NCBI RefSeq assembly: GCF_016432865.1
Contig: NC_067403.1
Location: 256,308,001-256,372,000 of the forward strand
DNA from: Antechinus flavipes
Taxonomy: Eukaryota
DNA: 64,000 nucleotides
Direction: 5' to 3'
Made by a program: the position numbers and the translations under genes. The notes below the pieces were generated by a model, which ran no database searches, was not told the DNA's origin, and worked only from the letters and a program-made list of their open reading frames with translations. This document shows positions 1 to 37,963 of the stretch, piece after piece (within the stretch, counting starts at the first letter, position 1; each line of letters begins with the position of its first letter).

Positions 1-2375
1 GAGGCCTGGGGGGCCTGGGCCGGGGAGGGGGGCCGCCCTCCGAGTGGACGTCGTTGATGACAGCAGCTGAGCGAGGCAGGCACAGGTAGCCCCCGTAGTG
101 GTTGATGCACTTCATCTCCCCCTTGCAGGCGTCGGGGATGGTCTCGCACTCATTCACATCTGGGGGCAGGGGGCAGCTCAGAAGCAGAGGCGCCCAGAGC
201 GGGGCAGCCCCTGTGGGAACCACTCCGGGAGACATCTGCCCCCCGGAGGGGGCGGGGCCGTGATGGGCCCTCACTTTGAAACCCGGGGGTCCCCTAGGTC
301 CACGACTCCCAGAGTGGTCACAACTCATGCAGGGGCGTGAGCGCAGGGACCCGAGCCAGCAGCCCCTGCGGAAACTGGGCTTGTCTTAATCTCAGCAGCA
401 GCAGGGACAGGGGAGAGGTCAGAGCCAGCTTCTTGGAGCCCATGGGGAGAGATGGGAGGGCGCCCCCAGGCCGGAGGCCCGCTTCCTGAGTCCTCACCCT
501 GCCTACGGGGGAGGACCCTCCCCCAAAGCCTTGAACTCCAGGCCTCTTCACAAGCGCCCTGTATCCTAGGCAGAGCCCCACCTATTCCCTACTGACCGTC
601 CCCACCCCAAGTAATGACCTCATGCCGGGAGAGGTCAGTGACCCCAGGAGCGAGGGGAGGGCTATCAGTGCCCAGCCATGACTCAGCCTGGGCTGGCGGG
701 GGCCAGAGAAGCCAGCTGGCAGCAATGGCCAGTACCTTTCAGAGCCTGGGGGGGGGGGGCATCCTGCAGGACCTGAAGTACCTTTCAGAGCCTGGGGGGG
801 GGGCATCCTGCAGGACCTGAAGCCCTCTGGTGCAGAAAGGACCAGAAAAGCTGCTGCAAACCTCTGAGAAATCAGCTGGCTTTGGGAGCCCAGACCAGGG
901 GCCCTGACCCGGCCCTGGGCCAGTGAGCTTCGAGGCCAGGGAAAATCAGTAGTCGTCAGTGTTCTATCTCAGTGCATCTCCAAGCTCCATCCCCCCATTA
1001 ACCTGGTCCCCACGTCCCACTGAGTCCTCCAAACTTCTCGAACTCAGCCCCTCCTTCCAGTCTTTTACAAACTTGTCCTTTTCCATCGATCAACCAACGT
1101 GACCAATCCCACCCCCAACATCTCCCTCCCTCGGCACAGACGTTGCTCCACTCCAGGCCCAGCTTCCCCTCCTGACCCAGCCTCTACACGGATGCCCAAA
1201 GCCAGGTTTCTAAGGGACCGCTACTCACCTCGCTCAAAAATACTCGCTGGCTCCCACCCGCCTCTCGGGCTCATCCCCCACAGGCCGCCATTATTATTAT
1301 CTCTGTCTCCATCCATCTTTGTTTATCCACCCACCATCCATTCACTCGTCCATCCAGCTGTCTGTCTATCCGCCCGTCTATCTGTCGGCTGTCTGTCTGT
1401 CTATCCGCCCGTCCGTCTATCTGTCCGCCCATCTGTCTGCTTGCCTGTCTATCTGTCCGCCCGTCTATCTGTCCGCCTGTCTATCTGTCGGCTGTCTGTC
1501 TGTCTATCCGCCCGTCCGTCCATCTGTCCATCCGACTGTCTAGAACTGTTTGGGTTTGGGTCAGGCTTTTACCCCCACTGGGGTTTGGGGGGATTTCTGA
1601 TCCCGGTTAATTCTGGTGCTTTGAGGTTCACCAACAACCTCAGGGGGTCAGTGGGGCTAGGGTTCCCCTGCCACAGACTAAGAAATGGGCCCAGAGGAGG
1701 CCAGGGGCTCGCTGCGGCTGACGGGGCCTGGAGGACCCTCCCTCCGTGACCCCCCGACCCCGGTCAGGTGTCTTCCCATTGGCTTCCTCCATAGGAGACG
1801 GAAGGGAGAAAGGCAGCGAGGGGAAGGCGGGGGAGCCCCCCAGAGGCTGTCCTCCCTGTCCCTCCCCCTGCCCTGGGACTCACCCTTACAGTGCTGACTC
1901 TCTGCGTCCCACTCGTACCCGTCCGTACACTCCTAGAGCGGCACAAGGGAAGCGAGAAGCCTGGTCACGGGCAGGGAGGCCCGAGCTTCACCGAGACAAG
2001 CTCATGGGTCCTCCAGGAACCCTCGGCTCAGGCGGGGTCATCTGCAGGGCCGGGACAGCCGAGAGGCGCCGGGGCCCCCAGCCCGGGACCCCCTCAGCTA
2101 CTCCCCCACCCCCCTGGGCTTCCCCGGGAGATGGGAGGGGTCCTCTCTGACCTGCCCTGTCTCCGCCCTTGCCCCAGCCTCACCTCAGGACACCCCGGGG
2201 TTCTCTCCCCCAGCCCCCCAGTTTCCTGCTGCTTCTCCCCACCCCCCAGGCCGCTCGCAGTTTCCCGGGGTCCCACCATGTAGCTGTCCGGCTCCTCGGG
2301 ATCCTGGGGAGACGCGGTGCCCAGAAGTAGCAGCAACAGCAGCTGCCCCCGGAGGAAGGAGACAAGAGGAAGCAT
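1..2375 (-). CDS. EFEMP2: EFEMP2 / fibulin-4, 5' part (first three coding exons; gene continues off the left edge)
   Basis: Coding exons 2277-2375 ([33 protein letters not shown], signal peptide), 1884-1932 ([16 protein letters not shown], 49 nt) and <1-159 ([37 protein letters not shown], cbEGF). All have GT-AG boundaries and match fibulin-4. Confidence 0.97.
731..820. repeat. Tandem duplication of a ~45-bp unit in EFEMP2 intron
   Basis: agtacctttcagagcct(G)n catcctgcaggacctga twice, differing only in poly-G length (12 vs 10). Confidence 0.9.
1300..1540. repeat. Compound tetranucleotide microsatellite (CTAT/CTGT/CCGT/CCAT)
   Basis: Directly visible; explains the repetitive ORFs 1099-1749 and 1319-1543. 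Confidence 0.9.
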
Positions 2376-2949
2376 CCTAGGGCCAAGGGAGGAGAGCCCG
2401 GCCTCAGTCCCCCAGTGGCCCTGCCCTGAAACCCCAAGTCTCCCTCGGGTCCCAGGCACCCCCCCCCCGCCGGGCCCAAATCTCCCCCTCGGCCGCTCAG
2501 CTGGACTCGGCCTCCCAGGGGAGGGTCCTGCCCCCGCCCATCACCCCTCACTCCCCCAGGCCCGGATGCTGGTCTCCCTCAGGAGGGGCCGGTGCTGCTT
2601 GGCCCCCAGCCCCATCCCGTGTGGCCCTTTCTGGGTCCCGCCCCCCTGCCCCCCATACCGCTGACACTCCTGCCCCGGGGCTTTCCTGGGCGCTGGGGAG
2701 GTCCCGATTCCCAGCCCCCCCCAGTTCTCCCTGCGGAGCAGGCTTCCCCCTGCAGCTCTTCCTGTAGGGTCCGGGCCCCCCCCAGTGCCAGCTGTTGCCA
2801 CCCCTCCCCAGGAGACAGAGAACGCTACATCCCACCCACCCCTCCCCCCGCCAGCTGTTCCCACTGGGTCCAGGTTGTTCTCCCCCATCCAGCTGTTGGT
2901 GCCCCTCCCCCAGCAGACTCCGGCCAGGCTGTGCTGCCCCCAGCTCACC

Positions 2950-3800
2950 CGAAGGAAGCGTGGCTGACCTTGGTCCCCAGTGCCATCTCTGCCCTCGGAC
3001 CTCAGCCTTCGGCCTGGCAGCTGAAGGCACAGGACCCCTGCAGTCAGCTCCGCTGGCTCTCCCCTCCCCGGGAAAAGGGGGCCCCCACCCCCGGCCCCTC
3101 AGCCCCCAGCCCAGCCTCGAGGGACCATCGTCCCTCCTCCCGCAGCCTGGGGTCCGCCAGGGCCGGGGGCTCCTCGCCAGGGCGGGGGCGGGGGAGTTCG
3201 GGCTTATCTTCTCCTCCCCAAACTTTCCAACCCTCCCCTCCCCCCACCCTCGGCCATTCCGCTGAGTCGGCAGTTTCCGCCCGGCGGGGGCCCCGGCATC
3301 CCGGCCCCCCGCCCCCGGCCCCCGCGCTCCCCACACTCACTTGAGGCTGGGGCGACCCCGAGCCCACCCCCGCGGCCCCCGGGGCTCCGGGCTGCTCCGA
3401 GCCTGTGGGCTTGGCGAGGCTCCGCTCCCTGGACAAGCGGCCCCAGGAAGCGGCCGCCCCCCGCCCCCCAGCCCGCCCCGGACACGACACGGATTCCTGA
3501 GCCTGAGCCAGGGGGAGGGCCCCGAGCCCGAGCGAGCCCACCGGCGGCCGCCCCGTCCGTCCCCCGCCCCGCCCTGCCCAGGCGCCCGGGCTGCGGAGCG
3601 GCGGCCAAGGCCGGGGAGGGGGCGGGGGTGGGGTGAGAGGGGGGTGGGGGCGGGGGGGGGCCCTGCCTCCCGGGATCCTTCGGGCGCCGCTCTCTGAGCT
3701 TCGGAGGAGCCTTAAACGCGGTCCGCGGCCCCGCCCCCCAGCCCGAGCCCTTCACTTAGCCCTAGAGAGCCTGGAGCCCCCCAGTGCTCAGAGCCGCCGC
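2950..3800. promoter_or_regulatory. EFEMP2 CpG island / promoter with GC boxes and G-rich tract
   Basis: Dense CpG, multiple GGGCGG/CCGCCC, G-run tract 3613-3660. Confidence 0.75.
3341..3520 (-). other. EFEMP2: Probable non-coding first exon of EFEMP2
   Basis: Strong minus-strand donor AA|GTGAGT (plus-strand actcac at 3335-3340) inside a CpG island; upstream end approximate. Confidence 0.6.
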
Positions 3801-4840
3801 CGGGTCACCCAGAATTCAGCTAGAGCCGGGATCCCTGAGCCCACAGTCTCGAAGGCTGGAGTACGACCCCCGGGCCCCCAAGCCGTCACCTTGAACCTGG
3901 GATGCCAGAGCTCCCCCCTCTCTTGGGTGACTCTCCCCCATTTCTCAACCTGAAGCTGAGAGACCCCGGCTCCCCCCTTCCCCCGAGCCGCTGCCCCCTC
4001 CCCCAGGGCGTCCCCCACGGCCCCTCCCGATCCCTGAATTTCAGGTGCGCCCCAAGTCTGCACCCGCAGGTCTCCCTCCCCCCATGCTCATCCTTCAGTT
4101 TGGGCCCCAGAGACCTTGTTCCGCCCCCCAAAATCTCCCTGAGAAGGAACTGGAAGATCCCAATTCTTGGCGCCCCAAGTTCCTGAGTCCCAGAGGAGAC
4201 CCCCGAGAACCTCCTTCCTCTGAGGTTCTTGCTCAAGTGCCGGTTCCTCCGCTCCAGGGGCTGAGCACCCAGATCTAGCTCGGAGGCCGGTGGTCAGAGA
4301 CTCGGGCTTCTGCCATCCAAATGCCCTCCGGCGACTAGACCAGCCCCACCCCCACTCCCAGCTGCTGCCCAAGGGTCTGCGCCCGTCTGTCCCATGAGCA
4401 TTTAGGAGCCTCCTTCCTGGGCAGGGCAGCCCGCCCCGGGGCCAAGGGCAGAGGGACAAGGGCCCCCCTCACTCCGCTCCAGGCTTTGTGCTCAAAGTCC
4501 CATCTTCCTCCACTCCCTGCACCTGGAACTAAGCCCTTGAGCCCCACCGTGTTCCGGACTCAAGCTGAGAGATCCCCACAGTTCCCCAAGAGCGGAAGTC
4601 AAGGAACAGCACGGTCCTCTAGCTTCTTTCCACACCTGGAAGCTCCGGGTGGCCCCCTTTGCCCAGCCTTGGCCCTGCCCCCACTTTTTCCCCACTAAGA
4701 GCCTAGACTGGCTTCCTCCCGTCCCAAGCTTGGGGCTAAAGGCTTGAGCCCAACCTCTGGGCCTGCTCTGAAAAGGCCCCGATAAGACACCAGAGGATCC
4801 AACGTTACTTCTACAAACGGGAATTCATTCTAGGAGGTCT

Positions 4841-24989: not shown

Positions 24990-25400
24990 CGAGATCCTAC
25001 CATTTCTCAGCTGTGGTCACACACCGGGACCCCTCCCTGACCTTGTTGCCCACTGCCAGCTGCCCTAAGCAGTCAGGACTTTGCCCAGGGCCCGGTGGGA
25101 CTTTCCTCACACTGTGAAAGCTGGCCTACTGCCCCTGCCCGCTCAGCCCCCCAAGGCTGTGGCCAGGCTGCCTCTGCTGCTCGCCCCCGACCTTCCAGGA
25201 GCTGGGGGCCAGGGGAAGGAGCCTGGACCCTGTGGCTCCTGAGTGTGGGCTCTCACTCCCGCCCCGCGCTCCCCCACCCTGCTTCCTTTGAGGTTGGGGC
25301 TCCGACTGCCCCCCTCACAGGTGTCATTGGCTGGTTTCCTGGCCTCAGTCATCTCTGACTGCTCTCATCTCACCCCTCACTTGGCTCGCTGGCTTCGAGA
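24990..25400 (+). promoter_or_regulatory. CTSW proximal promoter
   Basis: Canonical kB site GGGACTTTCC 25097-25106 and RUNX TGTGGT 25012-25017, directly upstream of the ATG. Confidence 0.5.
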
Positions 25401-28400
25401 TGCTCTCCTCTCAGCTCTTCTGCCTCCTGGGGCTGCTGGCCACGGGGGCCCTGGCCTGGAACACCTCCCCCACACCGGGACAGGTAAGCCTGCCCCCCCA
25501 TCAGTCCATGGGTCCACTTTGATCAGCACCCCTTTTTCTCTTTCCATTGTATCCCAATTTCAGTTCTGTCCCCTGTCCATCCCAGACTGCGAACCTCTCC
25601 CCTGGCACTGGGGTCCCTCCCCTCAGTGTCCTGGTATCCCTCCCAGCTCCTCGTCCTCTGTCCAGATCCAATCCTACTATTTGGAGCCCCTAGCTCTCCT
25701 AACTTCCCAGCTCCCACTCTTTCCCTTGGTCTTCCACCACGTTCTGGAACAACATAGAGAAAATTCTGGGGACATCCTGAGGAAGGTTAAAAGCCCTGGG
25801 GGGGGGGGTGCTGGGCCTGGGCCCTGCCGCCGACCAGCTGGGAAAGCCCCTCCTCTGCCTGCGCCTCCACGAGGCAAAGCCCTTTGTGGTTTTTGGAGGC
25901 TTGGCCCGATTGGCGTCCCAAGCCCCTCAGCCCATCCCCTCTCCAGGGGCAGGCAGGGGTCTCCCTCCTCACCCACTCTGCCCCCAGAGCTTCCACAGCC
26001 CGCTGCCAGGCACCCGGGACCTCAGGGAGCAGTTCAAGGCCTTTCAGATCCAGTACAACAAGAGCTACCCTGATGCAGCAGGTGGGCCTCTGACATCCCC
26101 CCACTTCTGTGTACATGGATGGCACAGTGTAGACCCCCCGCACCCACGGGTGGCACATGCACCGCGCTCACACCTGTCTCCACTCGTTATGTGGGGGCTT
26201 CTCTAGAGCCATCACTTCCTTTGGTCCCCTTTGCTAACACTGGCCAGGAAGCCAGGAGAACCACATCCTTTTGGCTTTGGTTCTCTGTAAGAAGGAAGCT
26301 GGATTAGGTGGTGACTAAGGTGCCTCCCAGCTCCGACTTGTGGTCTGGGTTTTAAGTCCTCCTCCCTCCAGCTGGCATTTTGGGTTCCATGTTCTAGGGT
26401 CCCTCCCAGCTCTAACACCCTGAGATTCATGTTCAGAGGTTGTCTGGCCCCCAACATGCCCTCTCGCACAGGACCTCTTGCTCTAGGGCCCCCTCTTGGC
26501 CCCCGGAGCCTCCCCTGCACACCCGCATCCCCTCAGAGAGTCGGAGGGGGCTGGCCGTGTCAACGGCAAGCAGGGAGATTTCTGGGTATGACCCCTGCCT
26601 CTCATCAGCGGGGGCCCTTACCTAAGGGGGGAGACGCCCAGGCCCGGCAGGGACGCCCTCTCCCGCTGGGGTAGATATGCATTAGATAGCTGGATGGGTG
26701 GATAGACAGACAGAAGGATGGACAGATNNNNNNNNNNNNNNNNNNNNNNNNNNNNNNNNNNNNNNNNNNNNNNNNNNNNNNNNNNNNNNNNNNNNNNNNN
26801 NNNNNNNNNNNNNNNNNNNNNNNNNNNNNNNNNNNNNNNNNNNNNNNNNNNNNNNNNNNGGATAGATACGTGGATGAATAGATAGATGGACAGATGGATA
26901 GACAGATAAGATAGAACCACTGGAATTTCCAAAGCTCTATTAGGGAAGATCTTTAGTGACTGAGGTTCCCATGTAGAGATCTGACCAAACCTCACGAAAA
27001 TGGCTATCACGTGAGTATTACCTGATTATTAACCCCATTTTACAGATGAGCAAATGGAGGGTCAGGGAAGTGATGCTCCTCCAAACCCACAGGAACAGAC
27101 CAGAGAGGGTTCAACAATGGGGGCCGAGGGGAGAGATGAGCTATTGAGGGCTCTAACTCCTCTCACTTGGGCAGGGGCAGAAGGCACTGCAGATGGGTCC
27201 GTAGGGACAGTGGTTCAGTGGGTCTGGAGGGGACACCTCAAGGTGGGAAAGGATGCAGACGTTCTCACTGGGGGCAGAGGAAGATCCGGTGCTTCTTCCT
27301 ACCTAGTTGTCCCATAGGGCCCTCAAAATCCCTCTCTAGAACGAGAACGCCGCTTTAAGATCTTTGCTGACAACCTGGCTCAAGCCCAGCAGCTGACGGA
27401 GGAGCACCAGGGTTTGGCCCAGTTCGGAGTGACCCAGTTCAGTGACCTCACAGGTAAAGGGGATTCCAGTCAATCAGACTGCTATCTTGGGGATGGCCAG
27501 AGGCTGCAAGGCTGCCTAGAGAGCATCTGGGTCACCTCTCTGCCCCATTTTCCAGATAAGGAAACTGAGGCTTGAGGAGGTTGAGTAACTTGCCCATCAT
27601 CACATAGTTGATAAATGTCAGGGCAGGAATTTGGACTGAAGTTTTCCTGCTTCCAAATCCAAGTCTTGCCTTCAGGGAGCTTCTGGTCTACTAGACCCAC
27701 TTCCTATTGCCCCCATATCAAGGCTTTCAAGATTAAAGCCCCCACTCCCTTAGGGTCTGCTCCGGTCCCTCCTGGGAGGCACATGACGATTATTGTCCGT
27801 GTCTCATAACTGAGAAAACCGAGTCCCAGAGACGGGAAAGAACTTACCCAAGAGGAGTCAGGTTGGGGTAGCAAGGTGCTCCCCATGACAATCAAGCTTC
27901 CTAGATCTAAGATGAGAAGGATGAACCAGGAAGCCGCTCCCTCAGTAGCTGAATTCAGAGCCCAGCCCAGCAGGATCGGATAAGGACCCCAGAGTTGTAG
28001 GACTCAAAGATCCTCATGACCTTATGCTCCTCATGACCAAATCTCCTGCTTCCAGAGGCAAATAATAGGATCTCCTAGAAAGGGCCCTTAGGGTTCATCC
28101 TAAAAAATGAACTTCTATGCCCATAGATCTAGGAGCCACCACACCCGATTCTTCCATTTTAAAGAGAAACCATGGAGGGGAAGTGCCGATTCCAAGCTCA
28201 CCCGTCTTTCACTGCCCGCCACTGCTTCCTGTACATTTAAAGTGTCGAATTGGGAGCCTTGCGTTTATTTCTCAAAAGGAAGCATGATATAGCTTGAGAC
28301 CAAGAGAGAGTTTCTGTGGTCTCAGACCTGACCGGTACCTGCCGGGCCGGGCTCTGCCTTCACCACCAAGTGAGCGTTCCCTCTCCGAATGTAAAATAGA

Positions 28401-31400
28401 GAAAAGTTGCTCCCTAAACGTTGGCATCCAACCTCCCCCGCTCGGAATCAGACAAATCTAACCACAAAATAAACAACAAAGAGACCAGGGAGGTTGATGG
28501 GATCCTAGAAAATCTAGGTGTGATAGACCTGGAGAAAACTGAATAGGGACAGAAAGGAATAGCTTTCTAAGCGGTACATGGCACCTACACAAAGACTGAC
28601 CACGTATTGGGGCATAAAAACCTCACGATCAAATGCAAAAAGGCAGAAATGGTAAATCCTCTCTCTTCAGACCACAATGCAAGAAAGGGCCAAAGATTAG
28701 GTTAAAAATCAATTGGAAATGAAATAATCTAATTCTAAAGAATGAGTGGGTCATGGGGTAGCTAGGGGGCGCAGTGGCTAGAGCACCAACCCTGAAGTTG
28801 GGAGGACCTGAGTTCAGATATGGCCTCAGATACTTTTAACACTTCCTGGCTAGGTGACCCTGGGCAAGTCACTCACCCCAACTGCCTCAGCAAAGAAAGG
28901 GGAAAAAGTATGGGATGCAGCCAAAGCAATTCTTAGGGGGAATTTTATATTGTATATTTTATATACGAAAATAAAATTGAGAAAGAGTTCATCAATGAAT
29001 TGGACAGGCAACTAAAAAAGCTAGAAAAAGAACAAATTAACCCCCCCACACCCAATTAAATAAAAATTAGACATTCTGAAACTCAAAGGAGAGATTAACA
29101 GAAACTAAGAAAACTACTGAGCTCACAAACGTCAGCAGTGACTAGAAATGGAAAAGAACTGCGTCCACGGTCAGGGGCTTTGGGTCTAAGACCACCGAGG
29201 CCCCCATTTGTCTGCACAGAGGAGGAATTTCGCCGGCTTTACCAACCATCCCGGCCCGATTACTCGGGTCTCAGAGTGAAGACGGGAGGATACCCAAGAC
29301 TGCAGAGGCCGAAGGCGCGTTCCTGTGACTGGAGGAAGGCGAGAGTCCTGACTCCCGTGAGAGATCAGGTACCAGCTCCCGCTCCCGTTGCCAGCTTCCA
29401 TTCACCCTCCCATCCCAGCTGGCTCTGTCCCAGCCAGACCACCTTACTCACCTGCTCCTTCATCAAGAACTCTCCTCTCCTTCCCTCCTGGATGGACAGA
29501 GGGAGGCAGGGAACAGGGAAAGCAGCTACGGCAGAAAATGACCTCTTCCCACAGAAAAACTGCAACAGCTGTTGGGCCATTTCCGCCGTGGGCAACGTTG
29601 AAGCCTTGTGGGCCATCAAGTACCAGCAGCTCTTTGAGCTCTCTGTGCAAGGTATAGGGGCGCTGCTTGGGTAGGGGAGCATTGCTGGGGGAGGAGTCCT
29701 CCCTGGGCCTTCGTGAGTAGGCCTGTGGGAGCCTGTATAGACTCATCCATCCTAACTCCCAGCAACCCTTGCTTTCTCCTGAGTCTGTGCTCCCCCGGGC
29801 CCCCTTCTCTTCCTCGTATGCAATCCCCAATTCCGTCCAGATGGTCCCGGTCTCTGCATTCTGCTGCCCCTTCTCTCCTGATCTCCGCCATCACTCCCTG
29901 CTCTGCGTTACCATGGTCCTCCCTCAAACCAAAGTCCTCTCCCTCCTCACCTTCCCTTTCACCCTGGCCAGCCCTCCGCTCGCCCAGCTCTGCAGCCTCA
30001 GAGGCGCCCTCGCCTTCCTTCTCCCTCCTCCAGCATCCCCAAACGCTTGCTGAGTTTGATGTGTTCTCATTGACCCATTAATAAGCACCTGCCCATCACC
30101 CCCAGAGTGGGGAGGGGAGAGAAGCAATCGAAATGTCCAGAAGTAATTAAATACTGGATAGATGCAGGCGCAAGGTGATGGGGGCGAGGCCGAGGGAAAC
30201 GAGAGCTTCCGGGAACTAGCACTGAGGAAGTGAGGGCATCCTAGGCCCGGGCACAGCCTCTGCAAAGGGGGGTTGTTCTCGACTACAGGGGCTTCTTCCC
30301 CAAATTCTCACAAACACCTACGTACAAAGTCCCTCCGTGAGCTCTCGGAGCTCTGTACTTCTGTGGGTAGCACACAGTAGGTGTGTCGGTGTTTTCTCGA
30401 TTGGAACACGGACTAAGGGGGGAAAGGCTGGGCCTGGAGTTGGGAAATCTGGGTTTGGATCCTTGACCTCAGCGGCTCACTCAACGTCTCACCATGGCCA
30501 TCTTGGCCCCATCACCTGCCCCAGGAGGTTAATGTTGAAGGGCTGTAGAAATAGGGACTGGGGATCTGGGAGGAGTCCCGGGCAGCCCATTACCGGCTCC
30601 GGGGAACCCCGAAAGCCTGAGGAGAAAGCTCCCAAGTCAAGCTTCAGGCACTTCCTGGGGAGGTAACCAGGGCCCACTGAGGATGCAGCACGGGAGCCTG
30701 GGAGCCCCATGTGCTCACTGGCGAGGGGGACATGAAGGGCCCGGATTCGTTCCTCGGGCCCGCTCTCAGGAGCCCGCCCGGCCTACGGTGAAGTGATGGG
30801 CCAGCAAGGCTGGCTTCGGGGACCCACAGAGAGAACTGAGGGGCCCTCCCCCCGTCCCCGCAGAGCTGCTGGACTGCCGCCAGTGTGGAAAAGGCTGTGA
30901 GGGCGGCTTCGTCTGGGACGCCTACATGACCATCCTCAACCAAAGTACGTGCATCCTGCTCCCCGCTCCCCCCCGGGGGCCCAAAGCTCCATCTCCCTGG
31001 GACGGAGCCCAGACAGGGACTCCCTGGCTCAGCCTTCACAGCCAGGGGCCTCTGAGTCTCCTCCCTCCCAAACAGGTGGCCTGGCCGAGGAGCAGGATTA
31101 CCCCTACAGACCCCAGCTCTCCAAGAGCTGCCAAAACAAAGAAAAAAGGGCCTGGATCCATGACTTCCTGATGCTGAAACAGGAGGAGAACCGTGGGTGC
31201 CGGGCCCCTGAATCTGAGGCTGGAACACGGGGAAGGAGGCGTGGGGCCCCCGTTGGGAAGGCCAGCTGGGGCTGCCAGCTAGCCCACTGAGCCCCTGGAT
31301 GATTCAGCCGTCCCATCTACAAAATGAAGACGCCCCCTCCAGCACAGTTCTCATCCTATTGTACACTGAGGGGGGCTCAGTCCCAAACCTGGGGTGCTTA

Positions 31401-32302
31401 CCAGTTAGCTGCTGCCTCTGATCTGGGGGTGCTCAGAGGCGGAAGAGGGAAAAGGCCCCCAGCTGCCCCCCTTTAGTGAAAGCGTTTGGGGGAGTAGATA
31501 TGAGGGGGCGTCAGCCTGAACCAGCCCCAAGGGGGCTGAAAGGGGAGGGAAACTGAGGAGCAAAGTGGGAACCTTAAGTCAGGGTGGGGCTTTGGGGGTG
31601 CAGGAACCCCAGATCCAAGGGCTGGGGCAGGTCTGATTCTCGTTACCAGGAAACTCCTTCCCCTTCTGCAGAAATGGGGGGGCTGCTACAGGTCGTCCTA
31701 CCCCCTCTCCCTGTTCTAACAGCACCCTCTCCCCCAGACATGGCCCAGTATGTGGCAGAAAATGGACCCATCACTGTGACCATCAACTCGAGACTCTTAG
31801 GGGTGAGGAAAGAGCAGGGGGTGGGGGGCTGCCGGCTCCTGGACCCTCGACCCCCAAGGGCTCATGGTCTGTTCCCTCCCTCATCAGAGTTACAGAAAAG
31901 GGGTGATCAAACCAGGGAGCAACTGTGACCCCGAGTACTTGGACCACGTGGTGCTGCTGGTGGGCTTTGGCCAAAGTGAGTGCTCGGGAGACCCCGGGGG
32001 GCCTTGGCCGGAGCCGGCCCCCCGGCCCCCCCTCACTGCTTCCTAATCTCCCTAGCAGTCCACAACTTTACCTATTGGATCCTCAAGAACTCCTGGGGCA
32101 GCAGCTGGGGAGAAAAGGTGAGTGAGGCTCCAGGGGGGCAGGGGGTGGGGCTTGCTCCCCCCCCCCGCCATTGCACCTAACCAGGACCCTCCTCCAGGGC
32201 TATTTCCGGCTGCATCGGGGAAGCAACGCCTGCGGCATCACAAAGTACCCCCTGACGGCTCTGGTGCGAGGACAGAACGACCCCATGCGCTGCCCCAGCT
32301 GA
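25400..32302 (+). CDS. CTSW: Cathepsin W (lymphopain), 11 coding exons, 351 aa (350 aa with the distal acceptor)
   Basis: Exons 25400-25483, 25988-26081, 27340-27453, 29220-29368, 29555-29651, 30864-30944, 31076-31192, 31738-31802, 31888-31975, 32056(or 32059)-32117, 32198-32302; total 1056 nt, all GT-AG. Signal peptide, ERFNAQ-type pro-region, QKNCNSCW (Cys), [10 protein letters not shown] (His), WILKNSWG (Asn), [18 protein letters not shown]; synteny; AATAAA at 32367-32372. Confidence 0.95.
26680..26915. repeat. (GATA/GACA/GATG)n microsatellite spanning an N gap in CTSW intron 2
   Basis: Tetranucleotide repeats on both sides of the N run 26728-26859. Confidence 0.85.
26728..26859. other. 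Assembly gap (132 N)
   Basis: N run. Confidence 1.
28440..29150 (+). mobile_element. Internal L1 ORF2 (endonuclease end) fragment in CTSW intron 3, with a SINE inserted at ~28753-28895
   Basis: [35 protein letters not shown] and [10 protein letters not shown] remnants. Confidence 0.8.
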
Positions 32303-33585
32303 AGACTCCCTCGAGTCCTTCCCCCCCCAACGCTCATGGCCTACAAGGCATCCTGTACTTGCACTCAATAAAGCCCCTGGTTCACGGCTCTCAAGTGTCC
32401 TGGCAAATGGAGGTCGGGAAAGCTCCCAGAGAAGGGAGGAAGCAAGGGATTGTGGGAGCCAGGAAGGCCATGGCCATCTGGTCCGGCTCCCACTAGAACA
32501 GCTTGCTGAGGGGTCACTGACCCCGAGGGTGGGTGTCCGAGGAGGGGTCTCTCCCATCTTTATGGTGAGGAACACAGCGTGTGCGCAAGTGCAGCAGCCT
32601 AAGGCTGGCCACATTCTCCTGCTGGCAGTCCACTAAGACCCCCAAATCCTTTTCAGAACACATTACCGCCCCCCTCCCCCCCAGCTAAGGCACTACAGCC
32701 TCCAGTGCGGGGCCTCCTTGAATCAAGGGTTCAAATGGCATCTCCCACATTATTAGCCGTGCGACCTTGGGCGGGCCCCTTACCCTGTTTACTTGGGCTT
32801 CCTCCGCAGAAAAAGGCAGGGAGCCGAGCCCCTCCCTGAACCGTGGCCCCAGCAGTAGCGTTTAGCCACTGTCGGTGCCCGGGCCCCCCGCACAGACTTG
32901 GCTCTCGGGGGTCTCACGATTGCACAGGGTCACTTCCCCTCTGCTTGAAGGAGCCGGCCCTCGGGGCCTTCATTCAGCCCCGGGCCCGGTGTCGCGAGCG
33001 CTCTGCTGGAGACCCCAGCCGGGGGGACACCGGGCCCCGAAGGCCGCCCGAGTCCGGCCTAGTGCCCAGGCCATCCTGCCCCTGGCTTCCAAGGGGAAGG
33101 AAGCGACAGAGACAACCCACAGGAAGTCACGGGGAGCGGACGCGACGGAACCACAACTGAGAACGTGGAACATCAGACCTGGGGCTGGGGGTGGGGGCCC
33201 AGAGCAGCCCGAGGACTGCGGGCCCCGGCCTCTGAGCTCCAGGGGCCTCCCGAAGCCTGGGGCGCCCTCCCTGCCCCCCGCCGCTCCGGGCCCGAGGAAC
33301 CCCCGGGACCCCCTGGCCAGGCCTTGCCCCAGGTCTGCCAATTTATTATCAGCACAAAGGCCTCAGGAGCGCCCGCGTGGGGCTGGGCTTCCCTGCCCGG
33401 CCCGGCTCCCCGCTCCTCCCCCGCCCCGTTCCACGGGGCAGGAGGGGCCCGGCCGGGGCCCGGGGGGCAGGTGTCCTGGGGCTGAGGCCGGGAGGGGCGC
33501 GCCCTGGGCTCCCCGGCCGAGCGTGGAGGTGATGAGCGGGGCTGGCCAGAGGTCCCCCTCCCCCCTCCCCCTTTGGCAGCAGGGC

Positions 33586-36600: not shown

Positions 36601-37963
36601 GAGATAGGTGATTTGCCCGTGGGTCACACAGACAGTGACTGAGACTAGACGGGAACTCGGGGTTTCCCGCCCGCAGGCCCGCCGCTCTGAGTGCCTCCGC
36701 AGAGGAAACTGGGGCCCGGAGAAGGGAAGGGGTTTGTCTGAGTGGGTCGGTGGCCCCCCAGGCTGGTGCGGGAGCTGCTTCCTATGTGGTCTCAGCTGTA
36801 AAAAGTCAGCTGGGCTCAGAGCGGGAAGAAACCCACCATTTGGACACCAGCACCTGGTACAAAGCCCCACTCTTGCCACCCTAGTTCTGGCTGGGAAAGG
36901 GGGTTCAGACCAGCTGGCGAAGGGAGCCGAGTGCCGACTGCCCCGGACGGTACCGGGCAGATTACAGGGGCAGTGGGGAGGTGGGAGGGAAGCCAGAAGA
37001 GCCGGGGGTGACCCCGGTTAGGGGGAGGCTGCTGAAATGTCCCAAAGAAGAGGGAATGCGCTCCTGGCAGAGGAGGAGGCTGCCGGAGCCCCAAGAGCCC
37101 TGACCTGTCTCCGGCAGCTCTTGAGAGTCACCCCCGTCTTGGTGCTGATGTCATCCAGGTCCTTCTTGGTGCCCTTGGACAGCTTCTTTCCCAGCACCTC
37201 CCGGACAAAGGCCTCATCAAAGGCGTAGTACCTGGCGGGCAGAAGGGGGAGGTCTTGGAGGGACAGGAGGCGCAGGCTGCCTGGGAGAGGGGAAGGGGCT
37301 CCTGAGGGGGTGAAGGTCTGCCTAAGGGGTCTCCGAGAGGGCCCAGGGGATGTCGCAGGGAGGAGGAGGGGCTTGAAGGGGGAGCCCAGGCTGGGGATGG
37401 GGGCGGGGCAGCCAGGAGAGGGGAGGAGTAGAGCAGAGGGAGAGCCTAAGAGGGAAAGCTGGGGGCGGGATCGGGCCGCAGGGGGCGGAGCCCGCGGGGG
37501 AAAGCCCACCAGCTGGGGGCGGGGCGGGGCCGTGGGGGGAGGAGCTTCGGGCCCCCACCTCTCGATGAGCAGGGCCTGCCGGGACGGTGGGATCTGGAAG
37601 ACTAGCTGGTGCAGCAGCTTGGGCGGCGTATGCAGCAGGCGCTCGAGCATGTGGAAAGTGCGGTAGTGGTCCATGGTGTCGCTCTGCAGCACGCCCGCCG
37701 TGGCTCCCGTCTGCTCCAGGATGCCCGAGCGCACCCGCAGCCCCACGGCATCGCTCACTGCGGAGGAGAGGCGGCCATGGGGGCGGTCAGGGGGAGGGGC
37801 GAAGGAGGGCGCGCCCCGCCCCCGCCCCACCCAGCCTCCCTCCCGCCCGCGGATTTCCCAGCGCTTCCCCGCCCGCACCCGAATATCCGTCCAGCCAGAG
37901 CCGATACACGTCCTCGTCGATGAGGGTCGTGTTGCCCACGAAGATGTCCAGCTCGTTGGTCAT
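33627..37963 (-). CDS. FIBP: FGF1 intracellular binding protein, 10 exons, 357 aa
   Basis: Exons 37879-37963, 37559-37757, 37105-37231, 35390-35490, 35187-35320, 34697-34805, 34379-34442, 34013-34099, 33821-33918, 33627-33696; 1074 nt. [28 protein letters not shown]...[22 protein letters not shown]; AATAAA (minus) 33342-33347. Confidence 0.97.
34490..34690. repeat. C-rich (G-rich on the FIBP sense strand) ~20/41-bp minisatellite in FIBP intron 6
   Basis: ggtcccagatcccctccc(c/t)cagccctggatcccccctccct repeated about 4-5 times. Confidence 0.85.

Follow-up and report, generated by a model that had tools for sequence, protein, structure and literature searches.

An ancient intron between the catalytic His and Asn codons of cathepsin W in Antechinus flavipes and the probable intronic origin of the placental insertion

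By textbook accounts, cathepsin W (CTSW) differs from all other papain-like cathepsins in an insertion located between the catalytic residues His and Asn. A preliminary description of 64,000 nt of DNA from the marsupial Antechinus flavipes (the window in the following) had placed an intron at exactly this position, raising the question of whether the coding insertion of placental mammals might derive from an intron that other vertebrates still remove. Reviews on cathepsin W treat the His-Asn spacing, the exon count and the numbering of the catalytic residues, with no discussion of the origin of the insert. A statement linking the insert to an intron was not found in the searchable literature, the gene-structure papers of 1998-1999 lying outside that scope, and the evolutionary inference on the placental insert appears to be unpublished within it.

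The window contains a complete CTSW gene on the plus strand, at 25.4-32.3 kb (Table 1). One stop-free stretch was searched against 1.8 billion representative proteins and retrieved marsupial and placental CTSW, and two follow-up protein searches brought in about 130 models from placentals, a platypus model and those of 12 additional marsupial species. The annotated A. flavipes cathepsin W isoform X2 (P0169, 350 aa) could be mapped to the window as 11 exons with exact translation, the C-terminus being identical to the window translation, and each of the ten junctions had one canonical GT-AG solution. Stop-free frames were observed for the exons carrying the propeptide motif, the NCNSCW active-site motif, YWILKNSWG and the C-terminal GYFRLHRG. 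Pfam searches with the exon translations gave matches to Inhibitor_I29 (I29) and Peptidase_C1, and C153, H287 and N307 were invariant columns in an alignment of 65 sequences. The CTSW clade of mammals and reptiles received 100/100 support in a maximum-likelihood tree, with marsupials as sister group to placentals. FIBP, the downstream neighbour on the minus strand, was also found there in the loci of elephant, mouse and Tamandua. Domains and catalytic residues, position in the CTSW clade and the FIBP neighbour all agreed, and the gene in the window is the CTSW orthologue in a conserved neighbourhood. A masked run (26728-26859) lies within intron 2, with GATA/GGAT-type simple repeats on both sides (window 26680-26920), and touches no exon.

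Table 1. Positions of CTSW, its intron 9 and neighbouring features in the window (position 1 is the first nucleotide of the window).
Feature	Position	Strand	Remarks
CTSW coding region, 11 coding exons	25400-32302	+	Exact mapping of P0169
CTSW exons 1-6	25400-25483, 25988-26081, 27340-27453, 29220-29368, 29555-29651, 30864-30944	+	
CTSW exons 7-11	31076-31192, 31738-31802, 31888-31975, 32059-32117, 32198-32302	+	
Coding exon 9, with catalytic His287 and the first base of the next codon	31888-31975	+	88 nt
Intron 9, phase 1, 10 codons past the catalytic His	31976-32058	+	83 nt; 80 nt with the proximal acceptor
5' splice site CAAA/GTGAGT	31976-31981	+	GTGAGT also in platypus, alligator and turtle
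G+C-rich intron block aligning with the platypus intron	31989-32044	+	Best local alignment, score 31
Conserved 3' block TCACTGCTTCCTAATCTCCCT, with CTCAC (A at 32035) and in-frame TAA at 32044-32046	32033-32053	+	
Tandem (NAGNAG) acceptor TAG CAG	32053-32058	+	NCBI isoforms X1 and X2
Coding exon 10, with catalytic Asn307	32059-32117	+	59 nt; followed by GTGAGT
CTSW stop codon TGA	32300-32302	+	
AATAAA, likely CTSW polyadenylation signal	32367-32372	+	65 nt past the stop codon; function inferred
Part of FIBP, tail-to-tail neighbour of CTSW	37018-37878	-	Pfam PF05427, E=2e-40

Exon 9 ends in GGC TTT GGC CAA A at 31975 and is followed by GTGAGT from 31976, so that codon 297, ten codons after His287, is split by intron 9. 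The coordinates given in the preliminary description, i.e. the donor at 31976, the TAA at 32044-32046, the A at 32035 and the acceptors at 32055/32058, were correct to the base, and the exon reached through the distal acceptor was 59 nt long, as had been described (32059-32117, then GTGAGT). Splicing after 32055 yields GFGQTVHNFT and splicing after 32058 yields GFGQIHNFT. In the NCBI annotation, TV versus I at this acceptor is the sole difference between isoform X1 (P0333, 351 aa) and isoform X2 (P0169, 350 aa). We infer splicing of intron 9 from the sequence signals, from the annotated proteins, which fit exactly, and from the compact linkers in models of 12 other marsupial species; presumably, the intron is removed constitutively via either of the two acceptors, which are 3 nt apart. 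Intron 9 itself is ordinary and already annotated. Within it, 20 of the 21 bases of 32033-32053 matched the alligator intron (L003 3936-3958) with one 2-nt indel, which was the top match in the alligator locus, and this block probably represents the branch-site and polypyrimidine region. The rest of the Antechinus intron has diverged from that of alligator, the 21-nt 3' block having been kept across the mammal-reptile split.

Retention of intron 9 would bring in the TAA at 32044 and truncate the protein ahead of the Asn. The distance from this codon to the last exon junction downstream is 71 nt, and such transcripts would therefore be expected to undergo nonsense-mediated decay. The same in-frame TAA could suggest that Antechinus CTSW is defective or mostly intron-retaining, with a truncated product devoid of the catalytic Asn. 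Such a reading is, however, at odds with the strong donor AAA/GTGAGT, with the pyrimidine-rich tract and the 3' block conserved in alligator, and with the finding that 11 of 11 exons are open and every junction is canonical; the same structure was also found in platypus and reptiles, and the short linker in other marsupial models. A defective or mostly intron-retaining gene is very improbable.

The age of the intron was investigated in loci mapped with annotated proteins, comprising a cathepsin W-like gene of platypus, the cathepsin W genes of alligator, turtle, elephant, mouse and Tamandua, and cathepsin F (CTSF) of Esox (pike). Read at the DNA level were one marsupial (Antechinus) and three placentals (elephant, the anteater Tamandua and mouse; none from Laurasiatheria). 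Nine intron sites were found from the propeptide (ERFNIN-motif) exon onward, eight of them common to 7/7 CTSW genes in position and phase, and seven of these eight were present in Esox CTSF. The ninth site (phase 1, 10 codons past the His and followed by a 59-nt exon) was observed in Esox CTSF, turtle, alligator, platypus and Antechinus; among the loci read, it was missing only in elephant, Tamandua and mouse. The homologous introns measured 97 nt in platypus, 134 nt in alligator, 143 nt in turtle and 112 nt in Esox CTSF, compared with 83 nt in Antechinus. Exon lengths around the site were 65, 91, 59 and 72 nt in Esox CTSF, 65, 91 and 59 nt in turtle and alligator, and 65, 88 and 59 nt in platypus and Antechinus. 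Esox CTSF thus confirmed the CTSF structure given in the preliminary description, i.e. a phase-1 intron 10 codons past the His and a 59-nt next exon. In human CTSF, the catalytic His and Asn are encoded by exons 11 and 12, according to a paper on fluke cathepsin F, which is in line with that structure.

In the maximum-likelihood tree, the reptile and platypus genes grouped with CTSW (clade support 100/100) and not with the CTSF of vertebrates or invertebrates. As the intron also occurs in CTSF, it is older than the CTSF/CTSW split and is the ancestral state. The claim of an ancestral intron was thereby borne out by fish CTSF and by the turtle, alligator, platypus and marsupial genes; when intron positions were mapped across CTSF and CTSW, as had been proposed, the insert was coding in no platypus or reptile CTSW and the intron was present in CTSF. 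These outgroups refute the converse reading, in which an ancestral coding insert was turned into an intron in marsupials by the gain of splice sites. Only the bare pattern of presence and absence between marsupials and placentals speaks for such an intronization, and its probability is close to nil, since the same intron, phase and 59-nt exon were found in platypus, alligator and turtle CTSW and in Esox CTSF, and the proteins of these same four genes are devoid of the insert. Elsewhere in the gene, Esox CTSF (L007) has a single exon of 201 nt versus 81 nt plus 117-126 nt in the CTSW genes, i.e. it is without one intron that CTSW has kept, and no large insert accompanies that missing intron.

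In placentals, the two exons flanking the ninth site are continuous. The fused exon comprised 210 nt in elephant, 198 nt in Tamandua and 201 nt in mouse, versus 91 plus 59 nt in reptiles. The surplus at the old intron site amounted to 60, 48 and 51 nt, respectively; all three are multiples of three and free of stops. No GT...AG was present at the old intron boundaries in these three species, and the annotated proteins mapped exactly. As had been described for human CTSW, there are 10 coding exons in placental CTSW, one of which contains the whole insert, and the human insert sequence given in the preliminary description was identical to the linker of database entry P0147. The linker from GFG to YWILKNSWG consisted of 6-7 residues in marsupials, of 6 residues in platypus, alligator, turtle and Esox CTSF, and of 9-28 residues in the approximately 130 placental models, not one of which had a 6-residue linker. 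The His-Asn spacing is 39 residues in human versus 20 in Antechinus, the catalytic triad of human CTSW being C153, H291 and N330 (PMC11171618). By these comparisons, the insert is a placental novelty, placed on the same branch as the disappearance of the intron. Directly before YW, placentals have S-I-P or S-T-P, which agrees with K-S-I-P at the beginning of the downstream exon in alligator; on its 3' side, the insert thus seems to keep the ancestral exon boundary. Conservation was low in the insert, with a majority-residue fraction of 0.46 as compared with 0.82 for the remainder of the mature domain, and in hedgehog and Rousettus the insert has been reduced to 9 residues.

Apparent inserts were also encountered outside placentals, in the platypus entries P0013 and P0033 and the Tasmanian devil entry P0334. 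These were rejected as parallel events and regarded as old gene models reading through the intron, since their extra residues begin with G-D-T, G-E-L or S-E-F, which is the GTGA.. donor read in frame. The false insert comprises 14-28 residues in the three models, and the extra residues of P0334 are nearly the translation of the Antechinus intron. A comparison of proteins alone can thus be misleading, as old devil and platypus models mimic the placental insert. P0013 and P0033 also point to further copies of cathepsin W in platypus. In the platypus locus (L001), a second cathepsin W-like copy precedes the platypus gene in head-to-head orientation, on the minus strand at about 400-4500. The exons for His and Asn can still be made out in this copy, as can the intron, but its GFG part does not share the frame of the exon start, so that the copy may be a decaying paralogue. 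The turtle Emydura showed tandem cathepsin W and cathepsin W-like genes (P0034, P0195-P0199), and its isoform P0034 apparently uses another acceptor for the intron 9 homologue and is out of frame past GYGR.

Whether the insert descends from the intron was investigated by local alignment of each placental insert, with whole outgroup loci and dinucleotide shuffles as background. The four outgroup introns were compared with each other by pairwise local alignments, a MAFFT alignment of them being too gappy. The Antechinus intron aligned with the platypus intron at score 31 (p=0.002 against shuffles), the joint top score in the 27.7-kb platypus locus, the equal score being the same place on the opposite strand. 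With the alligator intron it reached score 30, the best match in the whole alligator locus. The Antechinus intron thus finds the platypus and alligator introns as its best matches, indicating that homologues of this intron can still be recognised after very long divergence. Placental inserts aligned with the outgroup introns at local scores of 10-17, which were equalled at tens to hundreds of places in the same loci and gave p values of 0.2-0.96 against dinucleotide shuffles. A faint echo of the translated intron in the human insert (G.W.E...P.PP), which had been pointed out earlier, is accordingly at chance level, the DNA of placental inserts being at background. Global alignments of insert and intron gave slightly raised z-scores of up to 2.6, for which shared composition would be a sufficient explanation and which probably reflect a common purine-to-pyrimidine polarity.

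The composition of the insert was nevertheless like that of a short intron. In elephant, Tamandua and mouse, the 5' half of the insert is rich in G and purines and the 3' half is rich in C and pyrimidines, the halves differing by 0.64-0.90 in GC skew and by 0.30-0.42 in purine content. Compared with windows of equal length in the rest of the coding sequence, these differences ranked in the top 2-3% (GC skew) and in the top 1% or less (purines). The outgroup introns showed differences of 0.72-0.86 and 0.22-0.40, respectively, and the inserts equalled these as well as neighbouring short introns. Elephant has AAGG/GCAAGT at the position of the old donor, where the outgroups have GTGAGT; the match to GTGAGT was 4/6 in elephant, 3/6 in Tamandua and 1/6 in mouse, and 4/6 has a chance of about 0.04 at a fixed position. 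In each of the four outgroup introns, the exon frame stays open for the first 23-33 codons, and stops occur only within the conserved branch-site block, which lies in the 3' third. None of the four has a length that is a multiple of three. From the lengths and the 3' stops it follows that extra changes, e.g. a 3' deletion, must be assumed. An intron origin of the insert is hence suggested by position, reading frame, base composition and the putative donor relic, rather than by demonstrated homology.

The insert might also have arisen independently of the intron, by clean intron loss on the placental stem (recombination with reverse-transcribed mRNA or exact deletion) and unrelated growth of a loop by slippage or small duplication. 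The lack of detectable homology between insert and outgroup introns is in favour of this history, as are the repetitive parts of the insert (KSKS and RPRPR, and QPQPQPP in primates), which suggest slippage, and its variable length of 9-28 residues, which points to a plastic loop. That loss and growth share a site would then be due to the tolerance of the hairpin tip for insertions. In the papain family this tip varies in length and tolerates insertions, so that an independent insertion at this place is not particularly unlikely. Nevertheless, two rare events would be required on one short stem, about 2 codons apart, with the eight other introns unmoved. The purine-to-pyrimidine polarity (top 1-3% of coding windows in 3/3 placentals) and the elephant GCAAGT at the old donor would be left unexplained, and a search for a duplication source within each placental locus yielded none that was replicated across species. 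A candidate in intron 3 of elephant (L002 2981-3033; 46 nt, about 76% identity, score 28, p=0.005 against simple shuffles) was rejected as a chance match in G-rich sequence, because the inserts of Tamandua and mouse matched unrelated places. Intron loss followed by an unrelated insertion is therefore considered rather unlikely.

The insert was more likely made by de-intronization on the placental stem, i.e. by a loss of splicing that leaves an entire intron enclosed in an exon (Roy 2009, PMC2740785). The preliminary description had proposed that eutherians retained the intron in frame; this agrees with the finding that only placentals are without the intron and carry the insert at its exact site, but descent at the sequence level, at background score, could not be added to it. 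The ancient phase-1 intron persists in the CTSW of marsupials, platypus, alligator and turtle and in fish CTSF. In the proposed course of events, on the placental stem intron 9 alone would have stopped being spliced and its remains would have become coding. Loss of splicing would have fused exons 9 and 10, and the coding remains would have formed a weakly constrained and probably disordered loop of about 20 residues, the cathepsin W-specific insertion. Sequence recruited from non-coding DNA would be expected to be weakly constrained, as the insert is. Loss of the 3' third of the intron by a single deletion would be enough to end splicing and would leave an open segment near the observed size. 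A more specific version, which we put forward tentatively and consider unlikely in its full detail, is that one small deletion on the placental stem took out the branch site, the tract, the AG and the stops from an intron of 80-100 nt and left about 60 in-frame bases. The same mutation would then have ended splicing and given a protease of cytotoxic lymphocytes a new disordered loop, which would have been recruited later for a property specific to placentals, e.g. ER retention, processing or partner binding.

To place the insert in the protein, AlphaFold2 models of Antechinus and elephant CTSW were generated from alignments of 64-65 sequences. The Antechinus model showed strands 287-297 and 300-306 joined by a two-residue turn at a pLDDT of about 90. 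In the elephant model, strands 291-301 and 324-330 were joined by a loop, of which residues 304-317 had a pLDDT below 50. The compact, CTSF-like marsupial enzyme that had been predicted was thus supported by the 6-residue linker, as in CTSF, and by a confident tight hairpin in the structure model. According to the models, His and Asn would lie at the base of the hairpin and the insert at its tip. As the strands are about 11 residues long, the tip would be some 30 Å from the catalytic residues, and the insert is probably far from the catalytic site. It had been suggested that the insert could bear on why human cathepsin W has been hard to assay; its modelled position at the tip and its poor conservation argue against this explanation. 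A study of 2022 reported that wild-type human CTSW, but not the C153A mutant, rescued the block of influenza virus entry caused by CTSW knockdown, and it also lists candidate substrates. The structure of cathepsin W is still unsolved, according to a recent review.

The gene structures give a dated and polarised account of the insert, in which an intron that predates the CTSF/CTSW split would have been made coding once, on the placental stem. The hallmark insertion would then be a late, weakly constrained add-on. Marsupials, monotremes and reptiles offer natural insert-free forms of CTSW, which are ready constructs for expression, crystallisation and activity work. As de-intronization is considered very rare, a well-polarised mammalian example with a visible effect on the protein would be a useful case of new protein arising from non-coding DNA.

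Several known systems can be compared with the CTSW locus. The tandem acceptor TAG CAG of Antechinus resembles other NAGNAG acceptors in giving two annotated isoforms one residue apart. De-intronization was reportedly described by Irimia and colleagues in 2008. Surveys found it to be very rare, with none among 28,256 Cryptococcus introns (PMC2740785). CTSW resembles such cases in that the outgroups have an intron at the site, placentals have one continuous derived exon, and the additional segment is in frame, a multiple of three and free of stops, as required by the criterion of PMC2740785. It differs from them in age, since the surveys compared close relatives whereas the CTSW event is old and lies on the placental stem, and in that the similarity of insert and intron is at background. 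Imprecise intron loss by genomic deletion, in which a few codons are left or removed, has been described in Drosophila and plants. As in those cases, the intron of CTSW is gone and an in-frame change in length is left at its site; however, CTSW keeps 48-60 nt, i.e. most of a short intron and not a few bases, and its deletion step is inferred. Exitrons differ from the CTSW segment, for which an insert-free form occurred in none of the approximately 130 placental models and no GT...AG was present at the old boundaries, but the two have in common a coding, presumably intrinsically disordered segment inside an exon, at a site with an intron history.
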